From Macrostomum lignano (lineage: Eukaryota): a stretch of DNA of 64,000 nucleotides. Positions 1 through 49,794 of this stretch are shown here, piece by piece. A program made the translations under genes and the position numbers. Positions within the stretch are counted from its first letter, which is position 1. Each line of letters opens with the position of its first letter. The stretch covers positions 372,001 through 436,000 of the forward strand of contig NIVC01000567.1 in assembly GCA_002269645.1 (NCBI GenBank), read 5' to 3'. The notes below the pieces were generated by a model. That model was not told where the DNA came from, ran no database searches, and saw nothing but the letters and a program-made list of their open reading frames with translations.

Positions 1-724
1 GTTATTGTACTTGATCTGTCGGTTATAGACTAGACACAATGCAGCAAAGAGCTTGAGTAAAATGCTGTGTAAAAGGACAGATTATTAAAGCCTGAAGCTA
101 AAGTCCAGTTATATTCAGCCAATAAGACTCGCGCCTTTACATGTAAGTGCAGTATTGGAATTACAAATGTGTATTTTATTTTTTGTTTGTACAACATACA
201 GGAAAAAAGTCTAGAAAAAATCCCGGAATACAATTTCCTGCTCATTTTCAAATATCTAAGGATTTGCACAAGTAGTTGATAGCGAATATGACTATAAATT
301 CCCAATGATTACAACAAGCCAGCTCTCTGGGTGCTTATAAAAGCCCCGTGTTTGTTTTTACTAAAATTTTGCCTGTTCATTTGACCCCATCAACCAGCAA
401 CTGTATAGATAGCTGGTTGCTAAGGGTAGAAAAACACCTTCAATGCTACAAGACTTAAATGGAGAGTTATGAATGGTTACACTATCTAGAAAAAAGCTTT
501 CTTTGATTGCTGGCCTTTGGACACAAAAAGCGATTCACTCTGCCAAGAAAAGAGAGCTCCTAAAGTGCATGTATTTAAAAAAAACAAGGATTTCTAATAG
601 ACCCCAAGCTTAAGCTACTCAGCCTTTGAAAAGCTGCAAGTTTGCAATTTTTTATCAAACTGTACTTGTCACGTTTTAGTTGTGAAGCTGTACCACAAAC
701 AAACCGGCACTCCAAGCAACCATA

Positions 725-2030
725 AAAACCCGCAACCCTCACAGCACCCACCACCCCAATTCGACCCGGACCCCTCACAGCACCCACCACCCCAACTCGA
801 CCCGGACCCCTCACAACACCCACCACCCCAATTCGACCTGGACCTCTCACAACACCCACCACCCCAATTCGACCCGGACCCCTCACGGCACCCACCACCT
901 CAAATCAACCCGCACCCCTCACAGCACCCACCACCCCAAACACAACCCGCACCCCTCACAGCATTCACCACCCCAAAACAATCCGCACCTATCACAGCAC
1001 CCATCACCTCAAATCAACCCGCACCAATCACGGCATCCACCACCTCAAATCAACCCGCACCAATCACGGCATCCATCACCTCAAATCAACCCGCACCCAT
1101 CACAGCACCCACCACCTCAAATCAACCCGGACCAATCACGGCATCCACCACCTCAAATCAACCCGGACCAATCACGGCATCCACCACCTCAAATCAACCC
1201 GGACCAATCACAGCACCCACCACCTCAAATCAACCCGCACCAATCACAGCACCCACCACCTCAAATCAACCCGCACCAATCACAACACCCACCACCTCAA
1301 ATCAACCCGCACCCATCACAGCACCCACCACCTCAAATCAACCCGCACCAATCACAGCACCCACCACCTCAAATCAACTCGCACCCATCACAACACCCAC
1401 CACCTCAAATCAACCCGCACCCATCACAACACCCACCACCTCAAATCAACCCGCACCCATCACAACACCCACCACCTCAAATCAACCCGCACCCATCACA
1501 ACACCCACCACCTCAAATCAACCCGCACCAATCACAGCATCCACCACCTCAAATCAACCCGCACCCATCACAACACCCACCACCTCAAATCAACCCGCAC
1601 CCATCACAACACCCACCACCTCAAATCAACCCGCACCCATCACAACACCCACCACCTCAAATCAACCCGCACCTATTACAACACCCACCACCTCAAATCA
1701 ACCCGCACCAATCACAGCATCCACCACCTCAAATCAACCCGCACCAATCACAGCATCCACCACCTCAAATCAACCCGCACCAATCACAACACCCACCACC
1801 TCAAATCAACCCGCACCAATCACAGCACCCACCACCTCAAATCATCCCGCACCAATCACAACACCCACCACCTCAAATCAACCCGCACCAATCACAGCAC
1901 CCACCACCTCAAATCATCCCGCACCAATCACAACACCCACCACCTCAAATCAACCCGCACCAATCACAGCACCGACGACCTCAAATCAACCCGCACCGCT
2001 CGCAGGACCCACCACCCCAAATCAACGCGG
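725..2030 (+). repeat. 36-bp C-rich minisatellite (intronic; source of the 463-aa mucin-like ORF)
   Basis: Tandem unit acctcaaatcaacccgcaccaatcacagcacccacc. The frame stops at 2071-2073, just before the acceptor at 2079-2080. Confidence 0.85.
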
Positions 2031-2080
2031 ATATTTTACAGAACTCATTTGCCGTTCCTCACAACCCTATTAAAATCCAG

Positions 2081-5000
2081 CAAAAAACTTCAACTACTCA
2101 AACTGCACGGACAACACGACCGGAACGTCAGCCCAGCAACACCTCCCGCTGACTAGACTGAACCATCTAACCTGCTCACCTGGTCACTACTTAGTCGGCA
2201 GCAACTACAGTCGGATCAGTTCCAATCTAACCTGCAGTTGGAATGGCAGTCTGTCAGTTCAGCCATGGAATGCCGTCTGCCAACGCTACCCAGTGTGCCC
2301 GGCTGCTTCCCTAGACTCAGTGTTGCCTCCCACTGTGGTGGTTCAGGTTCAGCTACCAGCCCAGGTTCAGAGCCCCGCTCGAGCAGGTGTGGAACACCCA
2401 CTCGGAACTAAAGCATCCGCCGGTTGCTTATCTGGCGAATGCATGAGCGAGTTCAACACCACGACCAGACTTGATCTAATGGAGTGCACTGACAGTGGCC
2501 TAATTGATGACAATGACAATGCCGGCAATGACACCACGGATGGAAATGCTACTACAAGCGATGCTACCGCAATGGGAGGCAGCTGGAGATGGATTGGACC
2601 TGGCGATCAGGCGGCCGCTTCGGTGGGTTGTAGTGAATGTAATTCTGAAAGGTTACACCATGTCAGCTTCAAAAACATTTATATTAATTGCGGGTGTAAA
2701 AGACGAGCGTTGATTTAGGGTGCTGGGTGCTGTGAGGGGTGCGGGTTGAATTGGGGCTGTGGGTGCTGGGTGCTGTGAGGGGTGCGGGTTGCGTTGGGGC
2801 TGTGGGTGTGGGTGCTGTGAGGGGTGCGGGTTGAATTGGGGCTGTGGGTGCTGGGTGCTGTGAGGGGTGCGGGTTGCGTTGGGGCTGTGGGTGCTGGGTG
2901 CTGTGAGGGGTGCGGGTTGAGTTGGGGCTGTGGGTGTGGGTGCTGTGAGGGGTGCGGGTTGCGTTGGGGCTGTGGGTGCTGGGTGCTGTGAGGGGTGCGG
3001 GTTGAGTTGGGGCTGTGGGTGTGGGTGCTGTGAGGGGTGCGGGTTGAATTGGGGCTGTGGGTGTGGGTGCTGTGAGGGGTGCGGGTTGAATTGGGGCTGT
3101 GGGTGTGGGTGCTGTGAGGGGTGCGGGTTGAGTTGGGGCTGTGGTTGTGGGTGCTGTGAGGGGTGCGGGTTGAATTGGGGCTGTGGGTGTGGGTGCTGTG
3201 AGGGGTGCGGGTTGAATTGGGGCTGTGGGTGTGGGTGCTGTGAGGGGTGCGGGTTGAATTGGGGCTGTGGGTGTGGGTGCTGTGGGGTTTAATTGCTGCA
3301 ATCTATCACCAGTCTTTTGTCCTTAACTGTTTCAGAGTTTGATGTGCTTCAAGCCTTCCTGTTATGGCAGCGACATTCAATCCTTGATAGACCAGCTTAG
3401 AAACACTCGAAATGCTTCGATAACTCTTGGCTACAACATGCATAATGCTAGTTTTGATGCCCAGTTTCTGTAAGTGAATTAGTTTTAGTGAAGTCACTAC
3501 AGTCAAAGTCACTACAGCATCAAATACAGTTGAAAATGTATATTTTATTGCAGCCAATTGGTTACCCTGCATCCGGAGTTATCCAACGTTTCAAGTAAGA
3601 AAGTCGTGGGACTTTTCAATTTGATAGTGTAATATAAAACCCGTTCATGATACATAAATATCGATTTTTCAGACGTTCGATTTCCAGCCGGTGGCAACGT
3701 GACCTTCAGTTGTAAGCCGCCTTACTTTCGCAACTCCACCGCTGGCAAGGACAGAGCCGTGTGCACCTGCGCGGGCTGGGATATCAACGCCTGGGAGTTC
3801 AGCTGCGATGGTGATTTGCATCGATTTTATAATTACAAGCGTAGATACAAACCGGATAAATCGAAATAGATAGCCTCTTAAAATGCCCGAGGGTGTACAC
3901 TACCTGGGGATGAGATAGTTAGGGCCGCTGTACACCCTGCATGAGTAGTTAGGGCCGCTGTACACCCTGCATGAGTAGTTAGGGCCGCTGTACACCCTGC
4001 ATGAGTAGTTAGGGCTGCTGTACACCCTGCATGAGTAGTTAGGGCCGCTGTACACCCTGCATGAGTAGTTAGGGCCGCTGTACACCCTGCATGAGTAGTT
4101 AGGGCTGTTGTACACCCTGCATAAGCGCGTGCCTGCGTAGCTATCCGTATGCGTGTTGCGTGGTCTTAGAATTAGCTGCATCCGGATGCAGCAGGGAGGC
4201 GTTGCCGCTCATTCCGCTGACCCCTGGCGACCACGGGCAGTTGGTGCTGCGGTGTCCGTAGCGCGGTCCCCCTCCAGAGAGTCCTGGAAGTGGATGGTCG
4301 CTCGACCGTAACCCTTAGGTAGCGGGACGAGCTGGCAGAGATTCTCGGGCCTGAAAACGTCGTAGAGGTCCGAGGTTGAGTCGAAGTAGGTGAGCCTGTC
4401 CTGAGTAAAGGCGGGGCATTCACAGATGAAGTAGTGCTCTGCATTCTCGACACCAGAGAGGCAGAAAGAGTAGTCCTCACTTTAGATTTTTCTCTGGAGA
4501 GGCATGACCGATGCCTGGCCACACAAACAACACCCGAGATGGCCATGGTCACCATGCACCCTGATCTTTTTGAGGTTGAGTCCAAGCAGGGCCCTACGGA
4601 GGGCCTCTTCGCTCGCCTGGGGTCGACTGTCGTCCTGATTTGCGTCTGTGCTCAGAGAGCCCCCTGCGAACTCACTAATAATGACACCTAGTAACAAACA
4701 ACTAATATACCTAATTAGTCTTAATCTCCTTCCAGAACATTGTCCCACCACCCACACCGGTTTGGGCTCAAACAGCTGCCACTCCGGCAAGTACTACTCA
4801 TCTGAGAACAGCACGGAGAAGAAGTACCAGCCCGTGGGCCAGTGCAACATCACCTGCCATCCACATTGGATGCTAAACAGGCAGTTAGCAGCCGAAAATC
4901 TTCACCAGCAGGTCCTAATGGCGGGCAATGAAACGCGCGACATCGTCTTGGACTGCTTGACAAACAGAACCCTGGTTGGCATCCCGTCCGGGTTCAATCC

Positions 5001-5473
5001 GCAAACTGTGTGCGAGAAAAAGCCCTGCACCAACTCCAGCCTGACGGTGCCCGAAGGTGCCGAACTTGTTGGTCGGAACTACTCCGAACTGTATGAAGAC
5101 GGCGATAAACTGCAGTTCAAATGCTCGCCAACGTTTCAATGCAGCGACTCGGTGTACATCATTAAGAAGTGCAACTCGGGTCCCAGCGATTGGAAAATCG
5201 TCAGCATTAGAGAGTCGTGCGCCAATCCAAGCACCTGTCAGCTAAGAGACAATCACAATTACGACAGTAGCATCTCACAGGTGACTCCGCCAGTGTGCAT
5301 TCAGTGCGGCAAGTTCACGTTTGAGAATGCCAGCTTGAATTCGGTGGTACAGCTGGGACAAAGCATTGACTACAAGTGTGTGCACGACAAGTACCAGAAC
5401 CACACCGGTACGATGCGGTGCAAATGCGACGGATTTCACAATGTTACCGACATCAATTTCGTGTGCGAACCGG
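2081..5473 (+). CDS. Multi-exon Cys-rich extracellular protein with sushi/CCP-like modules (partial; both ends not located)
   Basis: Phase-compatible GT-AG exons 2081-2622, 3336-3469, 3554-3594, 3673-3810 and 4736-5473. They translate to CCP-like motifs (VRFPAGGNVTFSCKPPYF...C..W...FSC; YEDGDKLQFKCSP; LGQSIDYKCVHDKY...C) with many N-glycosylation sequons. Confidence 0.75.
2718..3290 (-). repeat. ~42-bp G-rich minisatellite, inverted relative of the 725-2030 array
   Basis: Unit gggtgtgggtgctgtgaggggtgcgggttgaattggggctgt. Its reverse complement shares aacccgcacccctcacagcaccca with the upstream array. Confidence 0.85.
3895..4125. repeat. 30-bp minisatellite derived from SINE internal sequence
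   Basis: About 7 copies of tacaccctgcatgagtagttagggccgctg. The reverse complement matches gtgtacagcggccctaact at about 6865-6883. Confidence 0.8.
4190..4640 (-). mobile_element. Degenerate 3' fragment of a non-LTR retrotransposon ORF2 (C-terminal CCHC knuckle region)
   Basis: The minus strand, across a frameshift and a stop, reads LRRALLGLNLKKIRV/MVTMAISG...SFCLSGVENAEHYFICECPAFTQDRL. This resembles the C-x2-C...H...CECPA knuckle of I/R1/Loa-type LINEs. Confidence 0.6.
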
Positions 5474-5559
5474 GTGAGTCACTTTTGTCACTGGCAATTG
5501 TCAGGTGTTGTTAGTAATTTGTATAATTTATGCGGTTCCTATTACCTCTCGAAACCGGT

Positions 5560-6070
5560 AAAGACTCTTTCCAAACCGGTAAACACTCTTTCCAAACCGG
5601 TAAACACTCTTTCCAAACCGGTAAACACCCTTTCAAAATCAGTAAACACTCTTTCCAAACCGGTAAACACTCTTTCCAAACCGGCAAACACTCTTTCCAA
5701 ACCGGTAAACACTCTTTCCAAATCAGCAACCACTCTTTCCAAACAGGTAACCACTCTTTCCAAATCAGTAAACACTCTTTCCAAACCGGTAAACACTCTT
5801 TCCAAACCGGCAAACACTCTTTCCAAACCGGCAAACACTCTTTCCAAACCGGCAAACACTCTTTCCAAACCGGTAAACACTCTTTCCAAATCAGTAACCA
5901 CTCTTTCCAAACAGGTAACCACTCTTTCCAAACAGGTAACCACTCTTTCCAAATCGGTAAAAACTTTCCAAATCAGTAAACACTATTTCCAAACCTGCAA
6001 ACACTCTTTCCAAACCGGTAAACACTCTTTCCAAACCGGTAAACACTCCAAACCGGTAACACCCTTTCAA
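5560..6070. repeat. 21-bp minisatellite
   Basis: Tandem aaacactctttccaaaccggt, giving a 7-aa period in all overlapping ORFs. Confidence 0.9.
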
Positions 6071-6764
6071 ACCACCGGGGACAACGATGGGACAAAAGTG
6101 TTTAAAAGGAAGTAACAATGTGTAAAAGGTAAGCTAAGGTAAGTTTACGTATAAAACTCTTTCCATACGTTTTCATTTTTATCGTATTAACTAACGAAGC
6201 GGACTTCACATTAATAATTAACTTTTGCGTAACTTGTAAAGAGTTTTATTTATTTTTTATCTACGCTATAAAATTAATGTTATTGCATTGTCAAATAGTC
6301 TTCCGATATTATGTACAGATAAAATAAATCGCTTGTCTAAGAATGCCCATTAAATTAATATTTGGACATAAACGAATATGACTTTATCGGATTCATTTTC
6401 CATGAATCGGTTTGATGCTGGTTCAACACGGAAATAACTACGAGCGTACATGAGCTCTAAAAATAACCTTACTCAAGAAAGAAAAATAAAAAAATGAATG
6501 AATGCACAGCTGCCTTTCGTAATGCACTACTAAAAGTAAAAACACGCGCAAACACTACAATTGCAGGCGCAATGTGTTCTCCGAGCCTATATGCCTTATA
6601 TTTAGCTGGGGAAGTGTACCTAATCTTCTCAATCTTCTCAATGAATTTTACGTTGCTGACGCGTTTCGTCGTCACACAGACGTCAACAGGGGTCAATTCA
6701 TCTAAGTTTTTTTTTATTACAGGCAGGGGGGTTGTGTGCACCCTGGCGCACTTTAAGCGACATA

Positions 6765-7058
6765 GGCACACAACCGGCGAGAGGCATTGCTGCCCATTCC
6801 GCCGACTCCCCTGAGCAGGCATACAAGCGCGCGGATATGTACGCAGGCACACACTCACACAGGAGTGTACAGCGGCCCTAACTTTATATTATCGTTAGGC
6901 ATGTACACTTCACTGCGCCTTGAGGGGTTGGCCCTCAAGGCCGTTAATTGCACGAGCAGAGCCAAGCCGAGATTCCAATTCAGCCCCAAATTAATGTGAC
7001 TGCACTTGGAATCGAGCCTGGGCCGCTGGCACACCAGAGCAGCTGGGCTACGGCCCCC
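6765..7058 (-). mobile_element. tRNA-derived SINE, family A
   Basis: The minus-strand head ggggccgtagcccagctg...ggctcgattcc has A/B-box-like motifs. The body is shared with 21264-21509 and about 39940-40085. Confidence 0.7.
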
Positions 7059-7299
7059 TTATTCATCTAAGTTACATGTAGCCCAACAAGCAATATAGTT
7101 ATCCCGCGTAATTATAAATTTATCAAGAACAGTAAGTGAAATAGTACGAGAGTAAGTCAGGAAAGAGAACAATCGATCAGGGGAATGTAAAGTCACGATC
7201 ATAAAAAGCCCAAAGTCTGGTCTGATTCAGTCTGGTAAAGATTCCTACGTTCAGAAGGAATACGAGGAAGGCAGATCGAGAGGGAGAGAGATAGACGCT

Positions 7300-8191
7300 A
7301 GGTCCAGCTCACAGTACTCTGAGCTCACGTTCCACCCCATTGCCAACATTGTTGTACGAGTACATTCAAGTTCGGTTTGTGCATTCTAATGAGCCTGAAA
7401 CTATATTAAGCACATAGTCAGTCATGAATCGATCTAACACTTTGAACGGCTGAATCCGCTTTACAACACGCTTTACACCAAGGGTCGGCAAACTCCGACC
7501 CGCAAAGCCTCTCTATCCGGCCCTCGGGTCTTTTGAAACTTCTCAGTTCTTCTCAGTGCCTCTTCTCAGCTCTCTTCTCTCCTCTCTCCCTTGTTATCTC
7601 TACTCTCTTCTCTCTCCTCTCCTCTACCCTCCTCTCCTCTCCCTCTCCTCTCCCTCTCCTCTCCTCTCCTCTCCTCTCCTCTCCTCTCCTCTCCTCTCCT
7701 CTCCTCTCCTCTCCTCTCCTCTCCTCTCCTCTCCTCTCCTCTCCTCTCCTCTTTTTTGTAGTTGAGAGTCTATCCTCATTGGTTGTCCGTTTGCTATGGA
7801 CAGCTTATTTAATATATCGACGTTTCGGGAAGCTAATCCACTCACTTACATGCAAAACGACTCCTCCTCTCCTCTCCTCTCCTCTCCTCTCCTCTCCTCT
7901 CCTCTCCTCTCCTCTCCTCTCCTCTCCTCTCCTCTCCTCTCCTCTCCTCTTTTATTACTTCGCCTCTCCTTTCTCCTATTTCTCTGCTCTATTCACTCTC
8001 CTCTCACTCCTTCTCTGGCCCGCAGTCATGCGCTGGGTTCTCTATCTGGCCCTTGGAGGTAAAAATTTTGCCGACCCCTGCTGTACACCCACAAGCAGAT
8101 AGGCATAATTACTACCTTCTATCCCATCCTAGCTCGCAGTTGGCAATGGTGTGGAGCCGAGAGTGAGCTCAGAGTACTGTGAGCTGGACCT
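7300..8191. mobile_element. Outer fold-back/MITE-like element with ~50-bp inverted arms
   Basis: 7300-7347 (aggtccagctcacagtactctgagctcac..ccattgccaac) is the reverse complement of 8139-8191. No TSD identified. Confidence 0.6.
7479..8080. mobile_element. Non-autonomous hAT (Charlie-like) element
   Basis: TIRs caagggtcggcaaa / tttgccgacccctg. The 8-bp TSD is ctttacac (7471-7478) / ctgtacac (8081-8088). The interior holds (CTCTC)n and a copy of 8255-8400. Confidence 0.8.
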
Positions 8192-8385
8192 GCTGTCCTA
8201 TAGCCTGTCCTGCGTTGCTTTGCAGGCAAGCGGCTGCGTTCAAGATTGGATAGTGTAGTTGAGAGAGTCTATCCTCATTCTCCTGCCTCATTATTGGTTG
8301 TCCGTTTGCTATGGACAGATTATTTAAGACTATTTAAGACTATTTAAGATTATTGACGCTTCGGGAAGCTAATCCACTCACTTAC

Positions 8386-9366
8386 ATGCAAAACGACTCC
8401 TCCAAGTACTCGTGCTATCAGCCAAAAGAATTCCACTTTAACACAAATGGCGATTGTAGATCAGTGTCAAACTGTGTTATTCTCGTCTCAAACAAAGCAG
8501 TGTGGCATAAATTGAAAGACATTGACTCTGACAGTTTTTATCCCCTTATCATAACAAATTCCCAGAATATTGCCAATGAATCTAAGAATCAAACGCATAA
8601 AAGGATAATTAAAATCACAGCAACGAGCCAGGACTTCAGCGAGGATCATCCAACAGTTCGAGATGTTCTGCAACACTGGCTGCACCTGCGGTCGTTGGGA
8701 AGGCCCAGTGACCAACGAAAGGAGGACCAGCTTTTCTTAAATTTGAAGGACAGGTTTAATAATGACATTTTTACACAATCCAAAGTAGCTTATCGGTTTA
8801 AATCAAACCCACATTCCCCCAGTGTTTTGTCCACAATTTGTGATGGTAGAAAGCCATTGGCTAAAGAGGATATTGTTAAGTGCTTGCAAGTAGATCGCTA
8901 TGCTTATTACTTTTCAAACAGTAGTACTGGCGATGTAGGTCCACTTGTCATTGTTGATGGGCCCAACCTTTGCGCTAGCAATGCTTTTTCAACTGTTGTG
9001 GATCAAATTCGCACAGAGCTACCGAATTCTCACATTTTAACGGTGTTTAAATATTCCCAAATCAATCCATATGGTAACTTAAAAATTATTGAATCCAAAG
9101 GCTTTTTCCCGATTTTTGGACAGCAAAAATTATCTGAATCTGGAGATGATGATGACGACATGGAAGCCCTCCGCTTGACCAGACAGTTTGATGCTGCCTT
9201 TATTTCCAATGATAAATTTTCTCAGAAGAAATATAAACAGATTAAAGCTGCCGTAAAGAATTACATTTATGAGTACCTGGTTTATGAAGACAAAGCTTTT
9301 CTTGTTCCACCCCGAGTTCCCTCCGAGTTCCTCCCAGGGGGTCACCATAATAAACCTGAAAGATAG
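8386..9366 (+). CDS. Intronless NYN/PIN-domain ribonuclease (Regnase/Zc3h12a/PRORP-type fold)
   Basis: Uninterrupted ORF of about 326 aa from the ATG at 8386. C-terminal motifs VIVDGPNL...GDDDDDMEALRL...AAFISNDKF match the acidic active-site pattern of Regnase/PRORP-type NYN domains. Confidence 0.75.
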   Translation: MQNDSSKYSCYQPKEFHFNTNGDCRSVSNCVILVSNKAVWHKLKDIDSDSFYPLIITNSQNIANESKNQTHKRIIKITATSQDFSEDHPTVRDVLQHWLHLRSLGRPSDQRKEDQLFLNLKDRFNNDIFTQSKVAYRFKSNPHSPSVLSTICDGRKPLAKEDIVKCLQVDRYAYYFSNSSTGDVGPLVIVDGPNLCASNAFSTVVDQIRTELPNSHILTVFKYSQINPYGNLKIIESKGFFPIFGQQKLSESGDDDDDMEALRLTRQFDAAFISNDKFSQKKYKQIKAAVKNYIYEYLVYEDKAFLVPPRVPSEFLPGGHHNKPER

Positions 9367-9564
9367 CAACTCCAAAAGCACTTCCCATCATAAATCCGAA
9401 ATACCACAACTCTGAAAACCAACATAGTGTTGGACATTGCTAGCATTTTCGCAGGTTGTGCTTTTTTGGGTTTGTGATGCCCCCCCCCCCGATCCCCCGA
9501 GGGGTCGCTTCACAACCTCGAAAAGCACTTCCTTTCACAAACCCGAAACTGGCTGGCAGCTGGC

Positions 9565-9657
9565 TTCACAAGCTCGAAATTTCACAACCTCGATAACCAT
9601 TCTAGCAGCCCACTTTCACAAACGGTTTTCGAGGTTGTGAAATTTCGAGCTTGTGAA
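9565..9657. repeat. Perfect 29-bp inverted repeat (hairpin) ~200 nt downstream of the NYN ORF
   Basis: ttcacaagctcgaaatttcacaacctcga (9565-9593) pairs with tcgaggttgtgaaatttcgagcttgtgaa (9629-9657), with a 35-nt loop. Confidence 0.85.
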
Positions 9658-11449
9658 AGCAACCCCCCCCCCCCGAGTTCATTTGTTTATATGCAGGTGT
9701 TAGGTAGCTACATGCAAAATGCTGAGGGCCAATTGATTTTGTAAGTAGATATTTTCGTGGTTAGACCATATGGCTTACAAAAGGCAGAGTTGCAGAAAAG
9801 AATGGTAGCTCGTAGGGTGGCAAAGCTCAAACTGGTCTGTGTGAGCGGCTATATAAATTACGTTTTCTGTTTTTGTTAATTTTTACCAGCAAATTTGCCG
9901 GTTCCAATTGTGCTTTTGCTCGTTTTGTTGAGTTAATGCATATGGGTTCCAATCAATATAATTTTCCTTCGGTGTTGAAAATTTAATTCTTTTTGGCTTG
10001 CTAAAACGGATAGGTTTAGAGGCATATACTAATTAATGAAAAATATGGTTTAGAGTAGCGCTAAGATTTTCAAGTGTACGATGTCAAGATTTTTAGAATG
10101 AGCAATTATTTTTTTCTTGGCAAAATATATGGAGTATGTGCCGTCAAGCAGTGAATGGTGTGAGATACAAACGCCGTTTTTTGAGTCGGAGTATACTTAC
10201 GATCATGGGTTTACGTTTTTGTTTGTGAGTCCCTAGTTTTTATTACTTTGATTACTGACAGTCTGGACCTTTCAGATAAGAGCATAAAATTCGAAATCGA
10301 GTCCTCTTAAAGTATAGCTGGTCTGTGCTGATCGTGTACTCTGTACATTGCTTAGTATAAAAAATGAGCATTTACATACATGGTTTAAATTTTTTTCGAG
10401 TGAGATGACAAGATAGCGGTACCTAGGCCTGTAGTATAGAGTATACTTTACATTGCAGTCAATACGACGTAAACAACACTGCAACTACATGTACTGGTAC
10501 CATCAGGTCGCGATCATTTTTAGCCAATTCTGGACCTACGAGGGCAAATAAATACTTTTCTCTATTACTGCAGCTGTACCGCTATATGGTTTTTACATGT
10601 GTCATACATGTACATGCAGCTCTCGAAACAAATCTCTAAGATCGTGTAGACTACTATGCATGGGTACTGTACATTGTCAAGCTTACTTACATGTACTTAC
10701 ATGTGCTGCTCACTTCAAATGATCATTATCGTAATATGTGGTTGCATCCACATTGCACGCTATATCGTCGATACCATGATAAGTGATTTTTAGCAGCGAC
10801 TCGGCAGCTGGACTCGGCGCACTCAGGGCTGCTCAATGCAGCCTTTCGAGCTGACGAGAGCGTCGGGATCTGACGCGCCCTGCTCTAACTGGTACCTTAC
10901 AAAGTACATGCGGGGCCGCGTATTTTGTTTTTGTTGTTGTTGCAAATAAAAATAAGCTGGATATTTAAATAACAAAAACACCCATGTTTGCTCCAATTTG
11001 ATTTCTACGCGTGGCTGAGATGTTTGCAGCTGGCTGGAGAAATGTGATGTTAATTTTGCTAGAGTTAAAAAATACACGAGTTAAAAAATTCTATGATATT
11101 ATTATAACAATACGTCCTTGCTCGCAAATGAACTAGGTAGTACCGCAAGTAGTGGAACGAAAACCCGCGGAAATTCCACGGATTTGCCTGGGCAAACCAA
11201 TATGGAACTAAATTTTATGGGAATTGTCTCGTAAATATTGAAATAAATTATTACTTGGGAATAAACTCAGAACTTTTCTAGATATAGAATCAGGATGACA
11301 TTTCAGTGCCTTTTCCATGATTTCTAATTAGATTCAACCTCGGCCATTGCCTCTGGGTCGAATAAATTAGCTGTTACTAGTACATGTTTAATTTAAGTCT
11401 CGAGTAAGAAGAGTAGTATTACGTCGGGCTCCGATCTTTACAATGGTAG

Positions 11450-11450
11450 T

Positions 11451-11543
<93 letters not shown>

Positions 11544-11545
11544 GG
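11450..11545. repeat. (GATA)n microsatellite
   Basis: Direct inspection. Confidence 0.95.
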
Positions 11546-12659
11546 ATAGATAAATAGATAGATAGAAAGGGGGATTGAGAGTTTTAGTTTGCTAAGGAGA
11601 AATCGGCAGATCGCAGGCAAGCCAAGGACTACTAAATTAAAGTACATGTAGAAGGACACAACACTCGAATCTATGGAAAATGTTTTGAAGGCCACTTTTC
11701 CAAATGTCACTTTTGAATGGTTGCATGTGGAAATGTATTTTTCGCCGGGACCTTCGAAATTTATTCTCCTTTAAGATAAAATAGCATTCGCGGCTTGGCT
11801 TAACCTAATATTTTTCCAATTTCACTTTTCTTCAGACAATCCAGCATTTCTTCAAAAAGGTATATAATGCCTTATCTAAAATTGGTTACGTGCCTTTGAA
11901 CCCATTTCTAACTCTTGGAAAAGTTCGATTAGCCGTGTTGAATCTGTAAACAATATAAAAAATCGCAAAGTTGGTGCTATACAGCAAAATCTATATAACC
12001 AAAAGTATTTATCTGAGTGGCCTTCATAACTTTTTCACTGAAAGGCGCGAGTGTCGCGTTCTGTATATATTGCTTTAGTTGTCCTTGAGGCAAGCAAAAT
12101 AGTGAGACTATAGGCATGTAGATAAAAATGTAAAGCTAAAGGTAATAGCTGTGAGAGAAATGCGATAGTAGTGGGACAAGGAGGCCGGGATCGGTCGAAC
12201 AAACGTTAGCTTTGGGTATAAGGATATATATGGCAGCATGTAGTCAATAAGGCATAAGCGTACAAAGAGTAAAAGCTGTAAAACACACTATTAAACGTGT
12301 CTCGTCGTCCTTTATTGGCTTCCCCTTACAGCTTGAATTGGTGTCGGCATGCTCCACGTACCAGCTCTGCATATACACGCTGAATACAGGGCGTTTGCTT
12401 TTGACGCGTACTTGATCTAAAAGGCCGTTCATTTTAGACGCGAATTTTCTACGACAAACGCTCGTTTTAAATGCGCGAACAACCGTACGGACGCATCAAG
12501 GTACGCCCATTCATCCATGTGGTGCATGGCGTTTTTTATTAAGTACGATAGATACTTATGTACCTTAGCATTATAGTAATGGAAACATTATTGTAACTGA
12601 TACTTTTTAATGCACAAAATATCATTACACCTTATAGACTATAATATAGTATGAAAATC

Positions 12660-19500: not shown

Positions 19501-19658
19501 CCAATGCCTTCTTTATTACACTACTAGTAGTAATATAAGTAATGTGTATTATTTTTTATAAGTAGCAACCACATCTACCAGATTTTTTTCACTATTATAA
19601 GGCAATAGTAATTGACATTCATATTGCAGAAACAGTAGCCAAACAACAACCCAAAGAA

Positions 19659-20012
19659 ATGTCTCTGAGCGTTCGTACGCTAAAAGTTTTCTCTAATCGT
19701 CTGCTCTACCGTAAGCAGATGATTGTCAGCGTTGCTCACGGTGCCTCTGGCAAAAATGTCAGCAAAAGCGATGTAAAAACGAAATTAGCGGAGAAGTTTC
19801 GCACCACCCCCGATCTGGTGGTCTGCTACGGCTTTCGGACCAGCCTTGGCGGTGGTCAGTCGCGAGGCTATGCGCTAGTGTACGACAGTCCTGATTACAT
19901 GAAGAAGTTCCACCTGGTGAAGCGGGTCCGCGATGCCAGCAGAAAGCAGCGCAAAGAGCGCAAGAATAAAAAGAAGAGGCAGGGAAACAAGAAAGAGAAG
20001 AAGCGGAAGTAG
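19659..20012 (+). CDS. RPS24: 40S ribosomal protein eS24-like, divergent and intronless
   Basis: 117 aa with NRLLYRKQM, GFRTSLGGGQSRGYALVYDS and SRKQRKERKN motifs. Confidence 0.85.
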   Translation: MSLSVRTLKVFSNRLLYRKQMIVSVAHGASGKNVSKSDVKTKLAEKFRTTPDLVVCYGFRTSLGGGQSRGYALVYDSPDYMKKFHLVKRVRDASRKQRKERKNKKKRQGNKKEKKRK

Positions 20013-20159: not shown

Positions 20160-20950
20160 ATTATGAGATGAAAGGAGAGAGAGATGAAATGAGAAGGAAG
20201 GGGTGAGAGATGAGAAGGGTAAGGGTGAGAGATGAGAAGGGAAAGGGTGAGAGATGAAAAGGGAAGGGTGAGAGATGAGAAAGGAAATGGTGAGAGATGA
20301 GAAGGGAGGAGATAGAGATGAGAAGGGAGGAGATAGAGATGAGAAGGGAGGAGATAGAGATGAGAAGGGAGGAGATAGAGATGAGAAGGGAGGAGATAGA
20401 GATGAGAAGGGAGGAGATAGAGATGAGAAGGGAGGAGATAGAGATGAGAAGGGAGGGGATAGAGATAAGAAGGGGGAGAGATGAGAAAAGAGGGGATAGA
20501 GATGAGAAGGGGGAGAGATGAGAAGGGAAACGGTGAGAGATGAGAAGGGAAAGGGTGAGAGATGAGAAGGGAAACGGTGAGAGATGAGAAGGGAAACGGT
20601 GAGAGATGAGAAGGGAAGGGTGAGAGATGAGAAGGGAGGGGAGATGAGAAGGGAGGGGAGAGAGATGAGAAGGGAGGGGAGAGAGATGAGAAGGGAGGGG
20701 ATAGAGATGAGAAGGGAGGGGATAGAGATGAGAAGGGAGGGGAGATGAGAAGGGAGGGGATAGAGATGAGAAGGGAGGGGATAGAGATGAGAAGGGAGGG
20801 GAGATGAGAAGGGAGGGGATGGAGATGAGAAGGAAGAGGATAGAGATGAGAAGGGAGGGGATGGAGATGAGAAGGTAAGGGGATGGAGATGAGAAGGGAA
20901 GGGGATGGAGATGAGAAGGGAGGGGATAGAGATGAGAAGGGAGGGGAGAT
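20160..20950. repeat. Purine-rich degenerate ~21-bp repeat (gagatgagaagggagg...)
   Basis: Direct inspection. Confidence 0.9.
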
Positions 20951-29000: not shown

Positions 29001-32000
29001 ACCCGTGGAAGCAAGAAATAATCTTCCACAAGCGATCTGTCACGTACCTGTTGCTTAAGATCTACAATGACGTAAGTACGAAAGTATAATAAAACTTTTT
29101 AGACTTCAATGTCTCGGAGCTACTTTAAATAAAGATTCATGACGCACAATATTGAAAAACCTCAGATCGTTCAGCTTGGCGCTGGGACTTTCACTAAAAC
29201 AACACTACGTGACTCCGTGATCGACTTCTCAGCGGATTTGTTTGCTGAGTACAACGGTATCCTGGTGCCGAAGCCGAAGCCCTCAACCAAGATGTGGAAC
29301 GTGTTCTACCCGCTCAGCTGGCAGCTGTGGCTGTGTCTGGCTGCCTCTCTGTTTGTGGCCGCATTCTGCGTCTGGATCATGGCCTACTACTCCCCGTTCT
29401 CAGCCGTCAATCTGCAGTTGGAGTGCGCCATAACTGACGAGGTCAACTATTTGGAATATTTGTGGACCGTGACCGGCTGTCTGATGCAGCAAGGCCAGGA
29501 CTTTTATCCGTTTGCTAGTTCTCCCAGGATTTCGCTGTGCTTTTGGTTCTTCTTTGTAGTGATCATTGGAGCTTCTTACACAGGTGATTCCGCAAGGGCG
29601 TTTTACAAACTCGAAATTTAACATGGTCGAAAAGACTTGCTAGTCGCGGAATCAGTAGGAGTCCAGCAACTAACTTGAGACTTCTAACATAATTTATAAG
29701 AGCAAATCAATGTACAGACATTACCTCCTACACTTGACAGCCTTCCTCACGTCTATGCTGACCGTTGCCGTGACCCAGACAACAATCAAATCGCTGGAAG
29801 ACCTGGTGTCCCAGACTGTAATTAAGCCTGGCGCCATACCCGGCACAAATATTTACCATCTGATGAAGTCACCCTTAAACAGTGTAGGTATCTACGACCA
29901 GATTGGAAAGCTGCTTGTTGAGGCTCCGAATTGTCCGTTTGAGGTGAGCCAATTGTGGTTTTTTGAGCAAGGTTTTTACATTTACACGAGTGTAGCTATA
30001 AGCGTACATCCTTGCATGGAGTGTGCCTAAGTTGTCACCGCTAGAACTACCAGATTTTTTAGATTTCGTTCAATGATACACGAAAACCTTGAGATTCCAG
30101 AAAGAAATCTATTAATACGACCCAGGCTCACGATCTTATCAAGCACTTTTGATGCACCAGAAAGAGTTAATCAGATGCTTATTTGAATTAAGACTATAAA
30201 ATCTCAAAATGCAGTCGCAAGGTGAAAAAATGGCCAGCCGACGGCAAAAAACTTAAACGCTGCCATTGTGCATCAACACATCAAGAGCTGTGTACAGCAT
30301 GCAAGTAACAATCTCAATTTGTGCAAAAATCCGTCGAATCGTCGTTTAATGCAAGTTTAGACAATTTGTACGTGCGTACGTTTTTCTAACCTATTTTAAT
30401 GTTTGCATTTGACTAAGGCTTCTTTGTAGTTTAGTCTTACTTAGTAAGCTTTGGCTTACTTCATTCTCAACTATTTCACATGTAAAAGATATATTATAGA
30501 GGATCTAGACAAAAATCCCGATCGCCAGGCTAAGGTATGCGTAGTCTATAGTAGTCCTTGACAACTTTAACCAGTCGCTATACTGTTACCCCTGTAGCTC
30601 TACCACTGCTCGGTGCTGCTAAAAGCTCTATACAGCATTAACTAGTGGTCCTTGGCTGCTGCTCTATCACAGTAAGGTGAACTCATGGAAGTGATAGATC
30701 ACTGTGACAGTCTTGATCTCTTAACGACGCAGTCAGCCTATAAATCTATAAGTAAAAACTTCAGCCTAATCGTGCCTAACGTCGCTTCTATCGGACTTAA
30801 AAGGAATAATTGCTGTCCCTAAGGGCAAGGGGTTAACAAGCTTTTTGACTCAAGGTCCAGAGAAAGAATCCAGTGCATGACTGCGGGATAGAAGAGGGAG
30901 AGAGGGTCAAGGAAAATAGTGAAAAGAAAATAGAGACAGAGGAGAGGAGAGGAGAGGAGAGGAGAGGAGAGAGGCAACATCGAAGTTCACCAAAATTCAC
31001 CCAGGCTTTGGAGAACAGCGAAACCGCATGCTTAGGAGACGTCTCTCGGCTGCAGTACTTTGCCAAGCTCAACTGCACTAAAGTCTACCTGGCAGAAGTG
31101 CAATTCAACGCTGCCACCGTAGCATTTATCTATCCCGAGGATGCAATCTACGGAGAAGCCACTAATTTCTAGTGAGTCCATCGGCTAATGGAGACATGCT
31201 TAAGTGTGTAATACTACTAGTCAGTTTAATTCAGCCTAGTCCTGAATTACTCGATTTGGAAATCGATGACAGCTGCTTCGCGTTCTTCTTAGTTGACTTT
31301 AACACGTAATAATTCATGTATTATCATTGCTGAGCTATTTTAGATGCTTTTCCCTACAAGGCAAAGATTCTTCGGGCCAATTGGGACAGAAAAAAACGTC
31401 ATTAGAAACCGGCTCGTACACTTCTTTCTGTTAAAACGCCAGTAATGATGTTAATAATAATTGAATACACCTGCCCTAATGGGCAGATGTGCAACCGACA
31501 GCTCAGCCGCAGCTATTGCGCGGCGCATCTGAAGGCTGCGTACGGCTGTTCAGTCCAAAGACTGGGGGGGAGGTCGCTGGGTGAACTGAAGCAATGCAGA
31601 GTCAAAGTGTCTTGCTCAAGGACACAAATTGTTCCGAGAGGGTGGAGAATCGAACCCCCGACCTTTCAGCCGTGAGTAGCTAAGGTTATTGAATGGATCT
31701 AACCAGAAACAGCTGGTCACCGAGCAGAAACCGACTGGAATGGATAATGGTTGGACTGCTCGTAAATTCGACCAACCAGCTAGATATCAGTTCCTGTTGG
31801 CTATGGTCCTCGATCTTGCTTAACGATTCCATCATGCAGGCTTTATAAACTGACATCCTCGTTGAGCTTCATAAGAATTTCATTCAGAATTTCGCAGGTT
31901 CTGAAATTTTGTCTTAATGGCCGAAACCTGACCTTTCATTAGCAAAATCCGGCAGTTATTTCGGGTCAATGTGTCAAAACGAGACCATTATAAAAAACGA

Positions 32001-33167: not shown

Positions 33168-36100
33168 ATGTCGACTGCTGGTGGTAAGTCATCCGGATGA
33201 TGCACTCCGTCGACTCTATCTCTGTGCCCTTCTATCTCTCTACTGCCTCTATCGTGCTTAAAATGCTCCATCTAGATAGCTACTGAGCCATATACCTTCC
33301 TACGCGGCTAGCGGCGAAAATTAATTATTAATCATAGTGCAATCCACTGCTCAGCGCATGATTTTTTACGCGTCTCTAGGATTGCTTCTGGCCTATGGAG
33401 AGGGACGGAGAGAGAGGGCTGAGGGAGTGAAAAAAGTTAGACTTGTGCCGCCAACTATCTCTTTGAATTGGAATTTACGATTCATCATTCATCGATCTAA
33501 GTTATATAGGCTTTGTAAAGACAAGCAGGCCTGTAGTATTAGCTCTCACTCGTTGCCAAGCGAACCATTTAACATCTCTCTAACACCCCTCTCTCCACTC
33601 GGGGGGTAACTCTGTCTCTGACCATTATTTTACTGAATTTCATCCCCCAGCGATAAGTCAGCAAAGGCAGCTGCGAGCCTTTCTGACTCAAAGCGCTCAT
33701 TCGACTGGTGCATCGACGACTAAACGTCCAACAACAGCGACGGCAACTCTGGGTGGATTTGAGTCGCTGTTTGATAACACAGAGTCAGCAGAACCAGATT
33801 TAGCCATTCTAAGGACCACTAGCGCACCCGATTCCGCTATGATACGTCTGGCGGCTACTTTGGACGATGCCAGACTGAAAATGTCGTTGCTGAAGCGACA
33901 ACAGCTGGCGGAAGCTGAGCAGTTGTCTCGATTGTCCAGAAGAAGCGACGAGTTGAGGAATTACAGTAGAGAACGATTTCTGGATAGGATAGAGGTTGAC
34001 GATGCTGTAAGTCATAGTACATAAATTTTACCCAAATGTTTTTTGTACATTTCAATCGAAAGGGAAAATACTTTTTGATGGGAAACTCTTGGAAAAGGTG
34101 CTTCATGTGATAAACTTGTAGGCTCGTAGCTAAATGGAAAAGGTGCTTCATGTGATAAACTTGTAGGCTCGTAGCTAAATGGAAAAGGTGCTTCATGTGA
34201 TACACTTGTAGGCTCGTAGCTAAATGGAAAAGGTGCTTCATGTGATACACTTGTAGGCTCGTAGCTAAATGGAAAAGGTGCTTCATGTGATACACTTGTA
34301 GGCTTGTAGCTAAATGGAAAAGGTGCTTCATGTGATACACTTGTAGGCTCGTAGCTAAATGGAAAAGGTGCTTCATGTGATACACTTGTAGGCTTGTAGC
34401 TAAATGGAAAAGGTGCTTCATGTGATACACTTGTAGGCTCGTAGCTAAATGGAAAAGGTGCTTCATGTGATACACTTGTAGGCTCGTAGCTAAATGGAAA
34501 AGGTGCTTCATGTGATACACTTGTAGGCTTGTAGCTAAATGGAAAAGGTGCTTCATGTGATACACTTGTAGGCTTGTAGCTAAATGGAAAAGGTGCTTCA
34601 TGTGATACACTTGTAGGCTCGTAGCTAAATGGAAAAGGTGCTTCATGTGACAAACTTGTAGACTCGTAACTAAATGGAAAAGGTGCTTCATGTAAAGTTG
34701 TCCATGTTCAGTATCTTATTCATTAAAAAAAATAGCGTCCACTATACTAAGTTACTTACTCGTATTAAAGTTATCATTTCAAATATTGCTCTCATCACTT
34801 CATGAAATGATTAATCAACCACCCGTCACATTCAGAGTCGTCAACCGCAACCGGTACAACGTTCTCGGCCGACACTCAGTCGACCAGCGAGTAGCAAGTG
34901 CGCCTTCTCGCCCTACGTCACCTTGCCAAAACCCGTTGACGTTGGGGAAGCCTACTGCTGCGAGGCCGCGTCAACATCGGAGGAGCTTCTCAATGGCAGG
35001 TCGCGAGCTCGAGCCCAGCTGATGTCGCAGCTTCGCTTGCGCCAGCCGGTGCAGCCAGTTAAATTCCGACACGATCGAACAGCGCAGGAGCTGGCTCAGG
35101 AGGGCTGCTTGCCAAGTCGCTATCTGTGCGAGCCGTATCCATGGCAACCAGGCTACAAGTACACGCCATATCCGACGCCAAAGCTGCTAGCCTGGACTAA
35201 CGATGAATCCGAACGGAGGCTAGAACGACAGAGGCTAGCTGAAGACTTCGATCAGCCCGAGACGCCTCCGGTGGCAGCAACTCCGCCGACTCCACCGACT
35301 TCACCGCCAAATCAGCCGATGCCGCCAGAGCCAGCAGCTCCCGTTGCCGAGCCTGCGTCGCTACTCGCTCCTCCTGCCACTCAGGAGCAACAGCAGCGTC
35401 CGAAATCTGGCAGATCAGCGAAGCCAAGTCGACGTGGACACCAGAAGAATCACAAGGAGCAGCAGCTCACACCGGAGCAGCAGGCGCTGCTGTTGGAGCA
35501 GCAGCTCGCTGAGAAGGCGGCCGCGCGGCGACGAAACTTCTCGGTGTCGACCATCGGCGAAGAGGAGCTGGCGCCAGTGCGACAGGAGCAGCAGCGACTA
35601 TTAGACGTGTGCCAGCGTCTTCGCGATCGTCAACTGGCGAGAGAAGCCGCGGCTGCGGCTGCGGCGGCTGAAGCGGCGGCGGTCGAGGCCGCGTTGAAAG
35701 CTGCTGCCGAGGCAGCCAATGCGCCGCCTGAGCCGCCGCCGCCACCACCGCCTCCACCAACTGACAAGGTGTCGAAAGGAAAGAAAAGTAGGAGCAGCTC
35801 AGCGGGCAGCGACAAGAAGACGAAAAAGAAGCCAGCAGCCGGTCCGGGAAAGCAGAAGAAAACAGCGCAAACGAAATCGCCGCGTTCAGCGTCTAGCGGG
35901 GGCAGCGACAAAACCGCCGCCTCGGGGGCAAAGAAGCAGCAGAAGAGCAGCAGCAGCGGCGGCACGCCCAGTCGCAGCGGCAGCGTCAGCGGTAACTCGG
36001 CTAAGAACGCCGACGACAGTAAAAAGAAAAAGCCCCAATCGTCGAAGCCGGCGAAAAAGGCGTCGCCAAGGGCGAAGTCACCCAAGGGTGGCAAGAAGCA

Positions 36101-37355: not shown

Positions 37356-39745
37356 TCACTTCACCCGCCAACTGCATGCGGGATTCACTCGTCGCACAAC
37401 CGACACCACAGCGTTTGGTTTCAACCGGCGTTCGCAGAGGTTACCACCGACCTCGTACAGGCAGCTGCCATTGCTGTCGCATCCGACTCGTCGAACAACT
37501 TCTTCGGCTGTTGTATTCGAAGCTATTAAAACTGATTTCACGATTTCCGACTCGTGTGCCGTTAAAATGACTCGCACCTGGATGATTGAACTGTTGCTTT
37601 GCTGAGCCGTTGGAGACAGGGGCGAGAGAGACGAGGATGTGGCTGAGAACGGAGAGGACGTTGGCGAAGGTTGCTGTTGCTGCTGGCAATGAAGATGACC
37701 TTTATGCTGATGCTGACGGCCACCGGCGATGCGTCGTAGCAGCCTCACCGCGGCGTGCGGCTGACGCTGCTGGGCCGCCTCGGCCGGAATTGGCAACGAG
37801 GGCGGAGCTTGTCGACGAATCTGCTGCAGAGTGAAGTCTGGAACAATCCAGACGATGCTGCGATACTTGATGAGCATCTCGACGGCTGTGATGAGGTCCT
37901 GACTGTCGGTGAGCAGCTGTTCCGGCGACTGAGTTGGAACCAGACTGGGAGCAATCACCGTTGCCAGAGCTTGCAGAGTCATCTGATTCTGATCACGGTG
38001 AGAAACAACCTGTGTCGAGGATAATTTAAGGTATAACAAATAAATAAATCAAAATAAAAAAATCAATCAAAAGTACACTCAATGCTTGCTTACTTTAGCT
38101 AAAAGCTCCACCAACTCCCGTAGTACACTACTGAACTCGCTTGGCAGTAGTAATACAAACAAATTCAGACCAAATAGTCGATCGGTTTCATCACATATCC
38201 GAGGTAGGCAGGTGAACCGTCCTGCGTCGCGAGATGAGACAGCTAGCGGACGCGGCAGTTCCCGCAGGCAGGCCTTCAACAAGGTGGATGCGTCGTGCGG
38301 ATCGATGGCCGAAGCCGCGGCGGCAGCTTCAACAACTTCCGGTCAAGCTCGACGAAAAGCGCGGACTCGAGCGGCCGATCCGCAGACGCGAAACAGGCCG
38401 CGAGTTTTCAGCGCGTCCTCGCGGCTCAAGCGCTCCGTCAGCACTCGAACAAGTCGCAGAAGTCGGACGGTTTTAGCCTCGACTGTCCGACTAGATGGTT
38501 CCGACGAGTCCAGTTTGTCTTCGTCGGGCATTGAAAGCGTTTGGCTGCGCTGCTGCAAACGAAGGAACCGGCGCTGGTGCTTGGTAGTGACGGCGCTTCC
38601 GTTGGAGGTCGCTACAGATGCCTGGCAACAGCGGTGCTTGTTGAATAAAGCCGTCAATTCCAGGCGGGCCAGACCGCGGACTCTTCGTCTGTCCAACTCG
38701 GCCAGGTCTTCGATGTCCGTGTCGCCCAGGGGATTGTTGTCGGGCAGCACGAAGGTCGGATAGGCTCCCATTCCGTCATCGTTATTGTCCGGACTTTTGA
38801 CGTCGTTGCACTGTCCTCCTACCATCCAATCTGCGGACTTTGGCGCAGATGCGTTGATGCCGTTGCCATTTGTGTGGCCATTGTTGTTGCTGTCTTCGAA
38901 GACGCAGCTGCTGCAGCAGCGGGACGATGAAGCTGAATTGTGCTGTGGGTTTCGTGTGGAATATTTTAATTAATTTAAAAAACTATCATACGAACTGAAG
39001 TTGTAACTTTTGCTATAGAATAAAACTCGAATCAAAAGTTAAATCTGCAAAACGGAGACTTTCCACGAACGACGAAAACTATCGAAGATCCAAGATTTTT
39101 CTCTTCTTTTTGAGTGAAATTTGAGTTAGGTAAAAACAAGATTTGTGAACGCTTCACCGCTGAAGAAGTCTAATTGCATGAGTGTCCAGCGGAACTTACC
39201 ATTGAGTCGACGGTTCCATCCGATCCATTGTTACTGTCGACACCATTGCTGTTCTCGTCACAGTCATTCAACAAGAGCCTCGTTTCCGGCTGCTCCGGCT
39301 GCTGGAAGCTGAACATTCGTCTAACGTCCTGCCTAGGACAGTCGCGCGACGCGATAGCAGTTGCAACCCGTCGAGTCACCGGGTTTAGCTGTCGGCCACG
39401 AGTTGCCCGCCTCCGCCAGGGCGGCTCCGCCTCCGATTGGCCGGCCAACTCGCAGGCGTCGCACCGTTGATTCGGTGCATCGTCGACGCCGTTGACCCAT
39501 TGACTAGCATCAACGGAGCGTCGCCACTGGCTGGTGTCCAACGTGGCCAACTCCCATTGGCTGACGTCGGCAGATCGACGCCAATTGCAGCGAGGAGTGC
39601 CGACACCGCCGATGCCGTTGAGGCCGCCGTTCATTGCAGCAACCGGGCGCTGCCGAAGATGCGACATCTCGGAATCACTTTGAGGTCGTCGAAACGACAG
39701 ACCCTGCTGTTGCTGCTGCTGCTGCTGTTGAATGTTGGCCACTTT
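37356..39745 (-). CDS. ARHGAP18/28/40 (Conundrum)-like RhoGAP; reading frame disrupted as given (possible pseudogene or sequence error); 5' boundary approximate
   Basis: Family motifs DVRRMF, YPTFVLP...IEDLAELD...LARLELTALF, the arginine finger GLFRVCGS, LLKACLRELP, NQMTLQALATVIAPSL and C-terminal LYEVGGNLCERRL...NPACSWRVK. In-frame TGA at 38343-38345. Confidence 0.75.
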
Positions 39746-49318: not shown

Positions 49319-49407
<89 letters not shown>

Positions 49408-49410
49408 CAA

Positions 49411-49467
<57 letters not shown>

Positions 49468-49470
49468 CAA

Positions 49471-49545
<75 letters not shown>

Positions 49546-49592
49546 CAATAGTAGTAGTAGTAGTAGTAGTAGTAGCAATAGTAGTAGTAGTA

Positions 49593-49638
<46 letters not shown>

Positions 49639-49641
49639 CAA

Positions 49642-49689
<48 letters not shown>

Positions 49690-49740: not shown

Positions 49741-49794
<54 letters not shown>

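Follow-up and report, generated by a model that had tools for sequence, protein, structure and literature searches.

The nearest described system with which the locus analysed here can be compared is the RNase_Zc3h12a family (PF11977), which comprises Regnase-1/MCPIP1 (ZC3H12A-D), N4BP1, KHNYN, and NYNRIN. The Caenorhabditis elegans proteins RDE-8 and REGE-1 belong to the same family. In ZC3H12A, the active-site aspartates are D141, D225, D226, D244, and D248, and a second, small and lineage-restricted family, RNase_Zc3h12a_2 (PF14626; C. elegans ERI-9-like), has a variable number of active-site residues (PMC5499597). With the latter, invertebrates already offer an example of a Zc3h12a-like domain that is degenerate and confined to one lineage. 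Flatworm-specific genes, for their part, have been studied in Macrostomum lignano (PMC5816591). The locus that we place against these systems lies in a stretch of 64 kb of the M. lignano genome (the window, meaning the whole stretch that was analysed), where an initial annotation, made from the sequence alone, had read it as a stand-alone, intronless NYN/PIN ribonuclease within a transposon-dense block.

The gene is an intact open reading frame (ORF) of the size that the annotation had given, running on the + strand from an ATG at 8386 to a TAG stop at 9364-9366, so that the 326-codon open frame (8386-9366) encodes 326 aa. This length is far beyond chance: when the 64-kb window was shuffled 200 times by mononucleotide, the longest ATG-initiated ORF had 240 codons, with a median of 129, vs 326 for the ORF itself. 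The frame is single and uninterrupted, and its paralogue is annotated as a single-exon CDS, which bears out the intronless structure. A possible poly(A) signal, AATAAA (9349-9354, + strand), overlaps the last ORF codons, its function being presumed from the motif. The three motif strings on which the nuclease reading was built are all present in the translation, with DGPN at residues 191-194 (8956-8967), a run of five aspartates, DDDDD, at residues 254-258 (9145-9159), and SNDKF at residues 274-278 (9205-9219). They fall within the C-terminal ~150 aa (8911-9363), the putative Zc3h12a/NYN-like region, while the N-terminal ~175 aa (8386-8910) are similar to nothing detectable, yielding a sub-threshold match to DUF4404 alone in Pfam (E 0.06-0.13) and 0.0 bits on a Regnase-family HMM. 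Pfam detects no domain, in agreement with the unrecognised N-terminus and the absence of CCCH, KH, and PPR regions reported earlier. The codons are indeed AT-rich, with a GC of 0.40 and a GC3 of 0.40 for the ORF against a local background of 0.43, and with a GC3 of 0.57-0.74 in six neighbouring exons that have solid Pfam matches (RPS24, iGluR, RhoGAP, RabGAP-TBC, SH3, and GMPPB). In composition, the ORF is like intergenic background.

Searching 5.8 billion clustered proteins, we found a sole homologue at E<=10, an M. lignano paralogue deposited as hypothetical protein BOX15_Mlig013088g1, which has 346 aa and is 96% identical over the full length. An exhaustive phmmer search over 1.84 billion representatives returned this paralogue alone, and contig scans found no relatives in viral and metagenome contigs. 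The gene is a lineage-restricted orphan of M. lignano, and the lineage specificity proposed in the initial annotation has held up, the 96%-identical paralogue being the only homologue. GenBank BOX15 models derive from the RNA-seq-guided "coregenes" transcriptome, which had been cleared of non-coding transcripts and of those overlapping repeats (PMC5730564). Because the model of the paralogue comes from this RNA-seq-guided, repeat-filtered gene set, its presence there implies that the paralogous gene gives rise to a transcript and does not belong to the annotated repeats. The gene identifier did not occur in the literature full text and supplements searched, and no expression data for either copy were found in them.

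The paralogous gene lies on contig NIVC01001407.1, which is collinear with positions 1-12312 of the window at 88-96% identity, reaching ~8.4 kb to the 5' side of the ORF and 3 kb to its 3' side, the one exception being a 344-bp piece whose orientation and place differ between the two copies of the block. Within these collinear duplicated blocks, the two gene copies are roughly 96-98% identical. No further copy or fragment of the ORF is present in the window or in the paralogous locus (85 kb). Because the paralogous locus is collinear with window positions 1-12312, the two copies are products of a block duplication or homeologues. Either origin agrees with what is known of the genome: the Mlig_3_7 assembly is redundant, with 180 Mb in blocks of >=95% identity (PMC5730564), and M. 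lignano is a neopolyploid (PMC10733133). The copy number and flanks, which the initial annotation had proposed to check, thus come out as one copy each in the window and in the paralogous locus, with collinear flanks and no dispersed copies in either.

The two copies differ at their 5' ends. Alignment of the window with the paralogous locus shows an in-frame upstream ATG (8311-8337, + strand) that is the start of the 346-aa model in the paralogue, whose N-terminus reads MDSLFNILTLREANPLTYMQNDSS, and that is closed in the window copy by a TAA. Behind the ATG at 8311, ctatttaaga units were expanded in tandem by 21 bp (about 8326-8352), and this made the TAA. The internal ATG at 8386 still yields a full-length product despite the broken upstream ATG. 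In addition, a 108-bp duplicate of the 5' end of the gene, containing the upstream region, the ATG, and the first 6 codons, occurs at 7760-7867 (+ strand) inside (TCTCC)n arrays and is absent at the paralogous locus; it sits 0.5 kb upstream of the gene. The 3' flank (9367-9658, + strand), bounded by C12/C13 runs, differs between the copies in nothing but a single C within a poly-C run. Inside it lies a perfect inverted pair of 29 nt, at 9565-9593 and 9629-9657.

The claim that the C-terminal region is an NYN domain found no support in family libraries. Pfam returned nothing for the full protein at E<=1, with PF11977, PF01936, PRORP, and any PIN family all absent, and no PIN-like family for the isolated C-terminal 148 aa or for the paralogue at E<=10. 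The matches below threshold on the protein, its halves, and the paralogue were noise, namely, DUF4404, Sclerostin, and Ldt_C. NCBIfam, PADLOC, and PHROGs gave nothing relevant and no PIN-like family, NYN_YacP included. A phmmer search of all PDB sequences with the full-length protein and the C-terminal part returned no Regnase, N4BP1, or PRORP; the PDB sequence matches that did appear were rejected as compositional or short chance matches, such as PIT54 with its "VDGPN" and the acidic stretch of NAP1L1. Structure prediction was uninformative in either direction. The AF2 single-sequence models are poor, residues 170-326 having a pLDDT of 49 (pTM 0.45) and the full-length protein one of 34, and a Foldseek search of the PDB with these low-confidence models reached a best E of 0.43 and a TM of <=0.3, with no PIN/NYN entry. 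In the low-confidence model of the isolated C-terminal region, a long beta-hairpin occupies the place where the Zc3h12a family has alpha2-beta3. Of the comparisons that the initial annotation had proposed, the one by HMM fell short of the Pfam gathering score, and the one by structure yielded models too poor to speak for or against a PIN-like fold.

A dedicated profile was built for the Regnase family. Proteins of PF11977 were collected with a Regnase-1 NYN query that served as bait only, and 26 diverse members were aligned. In an unfiltered hmmsearch (--max) with this family HMM, the candidate scored 9.7 bits (P 4e-5), a score reached by 0/2000 shuffles; the protein read in reverse scored ~0, as did its N-terminal half. 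With hhalign, a 51-column local match was obtained, in which DDMEALRLTRQFDAAFISNDKF...EDKAFLVP is set against DDRFIVKLA.E.DGvIVSNDnYRDL...vnDkFMPP (P 0.007-0.01; HH probability 4-6%); 0/300 shuffles reached the candidate, with the best of them close (20.5 vs 22.1). At a permissive MAC threshold, the match extends collinearly, pairing VIVDGPN with VIDGSN and ILTVF with ITVF(VP). Taken at face value, this insecure alignment matches D191, D257, D258, and D276 to four of the five active-site aspartates of ZC3H12A, with D248 replaced by Q280 and the DD pair lying inside the DDDDD run. The pair D257/D258 aligns with D225/D226 of Regnase-1, and S274, N275, and D276 align with S242-N243-D244. D191 and N194 of the DGPN string would equal D141/N144 of Regnase-1, and they are aligned solely at the permissive MAC threshold, where N144, S242, and N243 are matched in addition to the aspartates. 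When members of the family were used as queries in tblastn, most matched the candidate at the same place and in the right register.

Several comparisons put this match in proportion. The HMM of the N-half of the Zc3h12a domain, the most conserved part of the family, gave the candidate 1.0 bit, a score equalled by 109/2000 shuffles (P about 0.05). Among the positions invariant in the N-half of the 26-sequence alignment, the MAC alignment recovers just the FS pair and F41; H12/G13 (SHGN), G22, F30, RGH, V42/P43 (FVP), and TPSR are missing. Scaled to ~25,000 Pfam families, a P of 4e-5 amounts to an E of about 1, and meaningless Pfam matches on the same protein score higher, at 12-14 bits. Across 916 six-frame segments from the window and the paralogous locus, the whole segment containing the candidate scored 8.2 bits and was tied by an unrelated segment at 8.2. 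A non-coding segment of 48 aa at 10640-10783 aligns "YIVKLTYMY.LHVLLTSNDHYRNMW" to the part of the profile that the candidate also matches; its domain score is 6.9 bits, vs 6.7 for the candidate. The tblastn scores of the candidate (21-24 bits, E 0.1-1) fall beside those of spurious matches in the window (22-25 bits). The targeted match is genuine over shuffles but weak, and it is no stronger than that of surrounding non-coding DNA. We also considered the segment at 10640-10783, with its 24-aa NYN-like match, as the relic of a canonical NYN gene, and we rejected this idea: the segment is flanked by stops, no other family motif occurs in any frame, and its tblastn matches are noise.

Set beside RNase_Zc3h12a, the candidate shows both likenesses and differences. 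In its best, non-significant alignment, it shares the order and approximate spacing of a hydrophobic strand with DGxN, a helix-starting DD, a strand with SND, and a C-terminal [DE]K.F..PP, and the same alignment places acidic residues at four of the five active-site aspartate positions. In contrast to members of the family, it fails the Pfam model entirely, has Gln at the D248 equivalent, and does not have most invariant N-half residues (SHGN, FSCRGI beyond F-S, RGH, FVPxW, and TPSR). Its connection between beta2 and beta3 is ~10 residues shorter in the MAC alignment, and CCCH, KH, UBA-like, or other partner domains are absent. Its likeness to the family is as strong as that of chance matches in the flanking DNA. 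Nor does it join the degenerate family RNase_Zc3h12a_2, since a Pfam scan gives no match to PF14626. Because no standard criterion assigns the protein to the NYN/PIN nucleases, the resemblance in DGPN, DDDDD, and SNDKF is most likely coincidental and at best a vestige. With flatworm orphan genes it shares the lack of outside homologues, a short and simple structure, background-like composition, and weak constraint, although at 326 aa the candidate is long by the standard of de novo genes. What characterises an orphan gene is seen here plainly, in that no homologue is detected outside the lineage and a genuine CDS is open in both copies.

Divergence between the two copies offers a view of selection on the protein. 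Within the ORF, they differ by 15 substitutions, of which 12 are nonsynonymous and 3 synonymous, giving a dN/dS of 1.05; with so few substitutions the estimate is imprecise, omega of 0.4-1 being compatible with the data and omega<=0.2 rejected (P=0.004). The substitution rate of the ORF is 1.5%, compared with 1.2-2.3% in the downstream flanks and 3.4-4.4% in the upstream flank. The putative catalytic residues are spared by all 12 amino-acid changes, which is uninformative given so few changes. Indels tell a different story. Only one, an in-frame event of 6 nt, separates the copies within the ORF, where the rate seen in the flanks would predict about 9 (P about 0.001), a prediction that is inflated because the flanks are rich in simple repeats and microsatellites. 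Measured over 15 substitutions, dN/dS gives no sign of purifying selection on the protein, and the indel deficit points the opposite way. The initial annotation had counted neutral evolution of the ORF among the outcomes that would speak against its reading; the dN/dS comes close to that outcome, and the depletion of indels in the ORF departs from it.

The wider window differs from its earlier description as a transposon-dense block. No match to transposase, RT, or integrase families was found among long or high-complexity ORFs across the window, and what is dense there instead are tandem repeats, with 31 minisatellite/microsatellite rows in TRF. The region is minisatellite-dense. Rfam gave no matches over the whole window.

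We consider that the ORF is a genuine, lineage-restricted, single-exon orphan gene, present in two duplicated copies under weak constraint and without an assignable fold, and we give this reading about an even chance of being correct. Such a gene may be young or fast-evolving, and redundancy after genome duplication would lead to weak or relaxed constraint. Its protein would be a lineage-specific product with no demonstrable conserved catalytic fold. The main competing view of the protein is that its C-terminal ~150 aa form a highly divergent Zc3h12a/Regnase-type (PRORP-group, "NYN") PIN-like endoribonuclease domain. In this case, D191, D257, D258, and D276 would coordinate one Mg2+ via a network of water molecules and cut RNA; target recognition, in known members a matter of CCCH/KH modules, would fall to the novel N-terminal ~175 aa; and the protein could serve in mRNA decay or in defence against transposons or viruses. 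The collinear series VIVDGPN / ILTVF / DD / ISNDKF / EDKAFLVPP, set against VIDGSN / ITVFVP / YDDRF / VSNDxY / NDKFMPP of the family, speaks for it, as do the HMMER and hhalign scores over shuffles, the scores of about 0 for the N-terminal half and the reversed sequence, the four matched aspartates, the register of the tblastn matches, and the existence of degenerate members such as those of RNase_Zc3h12a_2. It is countered by the want of any PF11977, PF01936, PRORP, or PIN match even at E<=10 and of any Regnase among the PDB sequence matches, by an E of about 1 once all Pfam families are counted and the higher scores of meaningless matches, by equal scores of unrelated six-frame segments, and by a domain N-half that is non-significant and stripped of most invariant residues. 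Q280 in place of D248, a "DD" drawn from a low-complexity run, the beta-hairpin at alpha2-beta3 in the low-confidence model together with a Foldseek search that found no PIN/NYN structure, and a dN/dS of about 1, which argues against a conserved enzyme, weigh in the same direction. Because a low prior for any given family has to be weighed against a modest likelihood ratio, we hold the nuclease reading to be improbable. In its fuller form, the enzyme would be a stand-alone Zc3h12a-like PIN/NYN endoribonuclease of extreme divergence, joined to an N-terminal domain of a completely new kind; it would be found only in Macrostomum, evolve fast, perhaps in an arms race against transposons or RNA viruses, and escape current family profiles. 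This form we regard as doubtful.

The ORF could also be non-functional, either a decaying relic or a transcribed ORF without function, still open since too few mutations have accumulated. The dN/dS near 1 with a substitution rate the same as that of the flanks, and a GC3 at the intergenic background, unlike that of all the conserved neighbouring genes, are as expected for such a relic. So is the state of the window copy, in which the upstream start codon is destroyed, the 5' region is rearranged or duplicated, and the exact product is not recorded as a called gene; moreover, survival of the frame by chance through 15 substitutions and one indel has a roughly estimated probability of 15-20%. 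However, 326 codons are so far beyond chance that the ORF must have been kept by selection at least until recently. The indel deficit, even with its expectation inflated by the microsatellite-rich flanks, also runs counter to a relic, as do the membership of the paralogue in an RNA-seq-derived gene set and the full-length product still possible from the ATG at 8386. Overall, we find loss of function unlikely. An origin as cargo of a mobile element or from a virus would explain the intronless structure and the foreign-looking codons, and it extends the earlier suggestion of a mobile or retroposed gene. The lack of introns and the AT-rich codons unlike those of conserved host genes are compatible with it, and nearby there are inverted repeats (7300-7339 / 8152-8191), a palindromic element bounded by poly-C (9437-9680), and the 344-bp piece that was inverted and relocated between copies. 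Yet both flanks are collinear in the two known copies, which indicates block duplication and not transposition, and the 85 kb of the window and the paralogous locus hold no further copies or fragments. The neighbourhood is without transposase, RT, or integrase, no poly(A) tract or target-site duplication follows the ORF, there is no parent gene, viral relatives were not found in viral contigs or PHROGs, and the paralogue passed through the repeat filter. We therefore consider mobility or viral origin highly improbable, and the suggestion of a mobile or retroposed gene does not survive these comparisons.

Returning to the orphan-gene reading, we conclude that the locus evolves near neutrality and is best filed with the other uncharacterised orphan genes, of which this neopolyploid genome has many. 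Its main value is cautionary, as convincing-looking DGxN, DD, and SND motifs in a real ORF could not be told apart statistically from matches in adjacent non-coding DNA. An Mg2+-dependent endoribonuclease would nevertheless be the only concrete biochemical lead that the sequence offers. Were the nuclease reading correct, the Regnase/N4BP1/RDE-8 nucleases would gain a member whose sequence is invisible to profiles, and a candidate RNA-surveillance factor specific to flatworms would be at hand in an animal amenable to transgenesis and RNAi.

The 5' end of the gene is rearranged relative to L001, the paralogous locus on contig NIVC01001407.1. An insertion of ~430 bp, present in the window copy and absent from L001, carries a duplicated 108-bp stretch from the 5' end of the gene (window 7760-7867, within 7533-8102). 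The duplicate takes in upstream sequence, the start codon and the coding sequence as far as codon six (MQNDSS), and it is flanked on each side by a (TCTCC)n array. Closer to the gene, a 21-bp tandem expansion of ctatttaaga units relative to L001 (window 8326-8352) places an in-frame TAA downstream of an upstream ATG (8311), and the predicted product is thereby truncated to 326 aa instead of 346 aa. The segment just upstream of the gene is also flanked in both copies by a 40-nt inverted repeat with 88% complementarity (window 7300-7339 and 8152-8191; L001 at about 9430 and 9860), which may represent a MITE-like element or a hairpin.

On the 3' side, the ~290 nt immediately following the stop codon (window 9367-9658; L001 11042-11332) are identical between the copies except for one C in a poly-C run; the ORF has diverged by 1.5% and the upstream flank by 4.4%. 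This stretch is edged by C12/C13 runs and contains a perfect 29-nt inverted pair (window 9565-9593 and 9629-9657); beyond it, L001 has additional tandem 'tttcgagcttgtgaaa' units. Candidate explanations for the stretch are a conserved hairpin in the 3'UTR, a tract of gene conversion and a MITE-like element. Collinearity of the copies ends past ~12.5 kb in the window and ~14.9 kb in L001. Within the otherwise collinear blocks, one segment of 344 bp differs in both position and orientation between the copies (L001 5708-6051 versus window 7051-6708).

The noise level of the Regnase-family profile, an RNase_Zc3h12a (PF11977)-type NYN profile, can be gauged from a non-coding six-frame segment at window 10640-10783 (+), 'YIVKLTYMYLHVLLTSNDHYRNMW', which at 6.9 bits matches the profile no less well than the candidate ORF. 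The segment has stops on both flanks and contains no further NYN motifs, and it is a chance match to the profile.

Elsewhere in the window, a ribosomal protein S24e is encoded by a single uninterrupted ORF (19566-20009, +; E 1.6e-23; 79/95 profile positions covered; GC3 0.64), possibly a gene with few introns or else a processed copy. Conserved multi-exon genes encode an ionotropic glutamate receptor (Lig_chan; 29133-30027, +), an ARHGAP40-like RhoGAP (37359-38048, -), an SGSM3-like RabGAP-TBC protein that also carries an SH3 and a RUN domain (48973-49308 and 55531-56124, +) and GMPPB (61649-62173, -). Minisatellite and microsatellite density is very high (31 TRF rows), as at 727-2026, 2718-3284, 5552-6073, 20165-20950, 34090-34693, 49307-51603, 56718-58145, 59686-60518 and 62816-63643, with units in the window including a 36-mer x36, (AGT)n x768, a 24-mer x60 and (GACA)n x211. 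These repeats account for most of the long multi-frame ORFs and blocks of extreme GC skew in the window.
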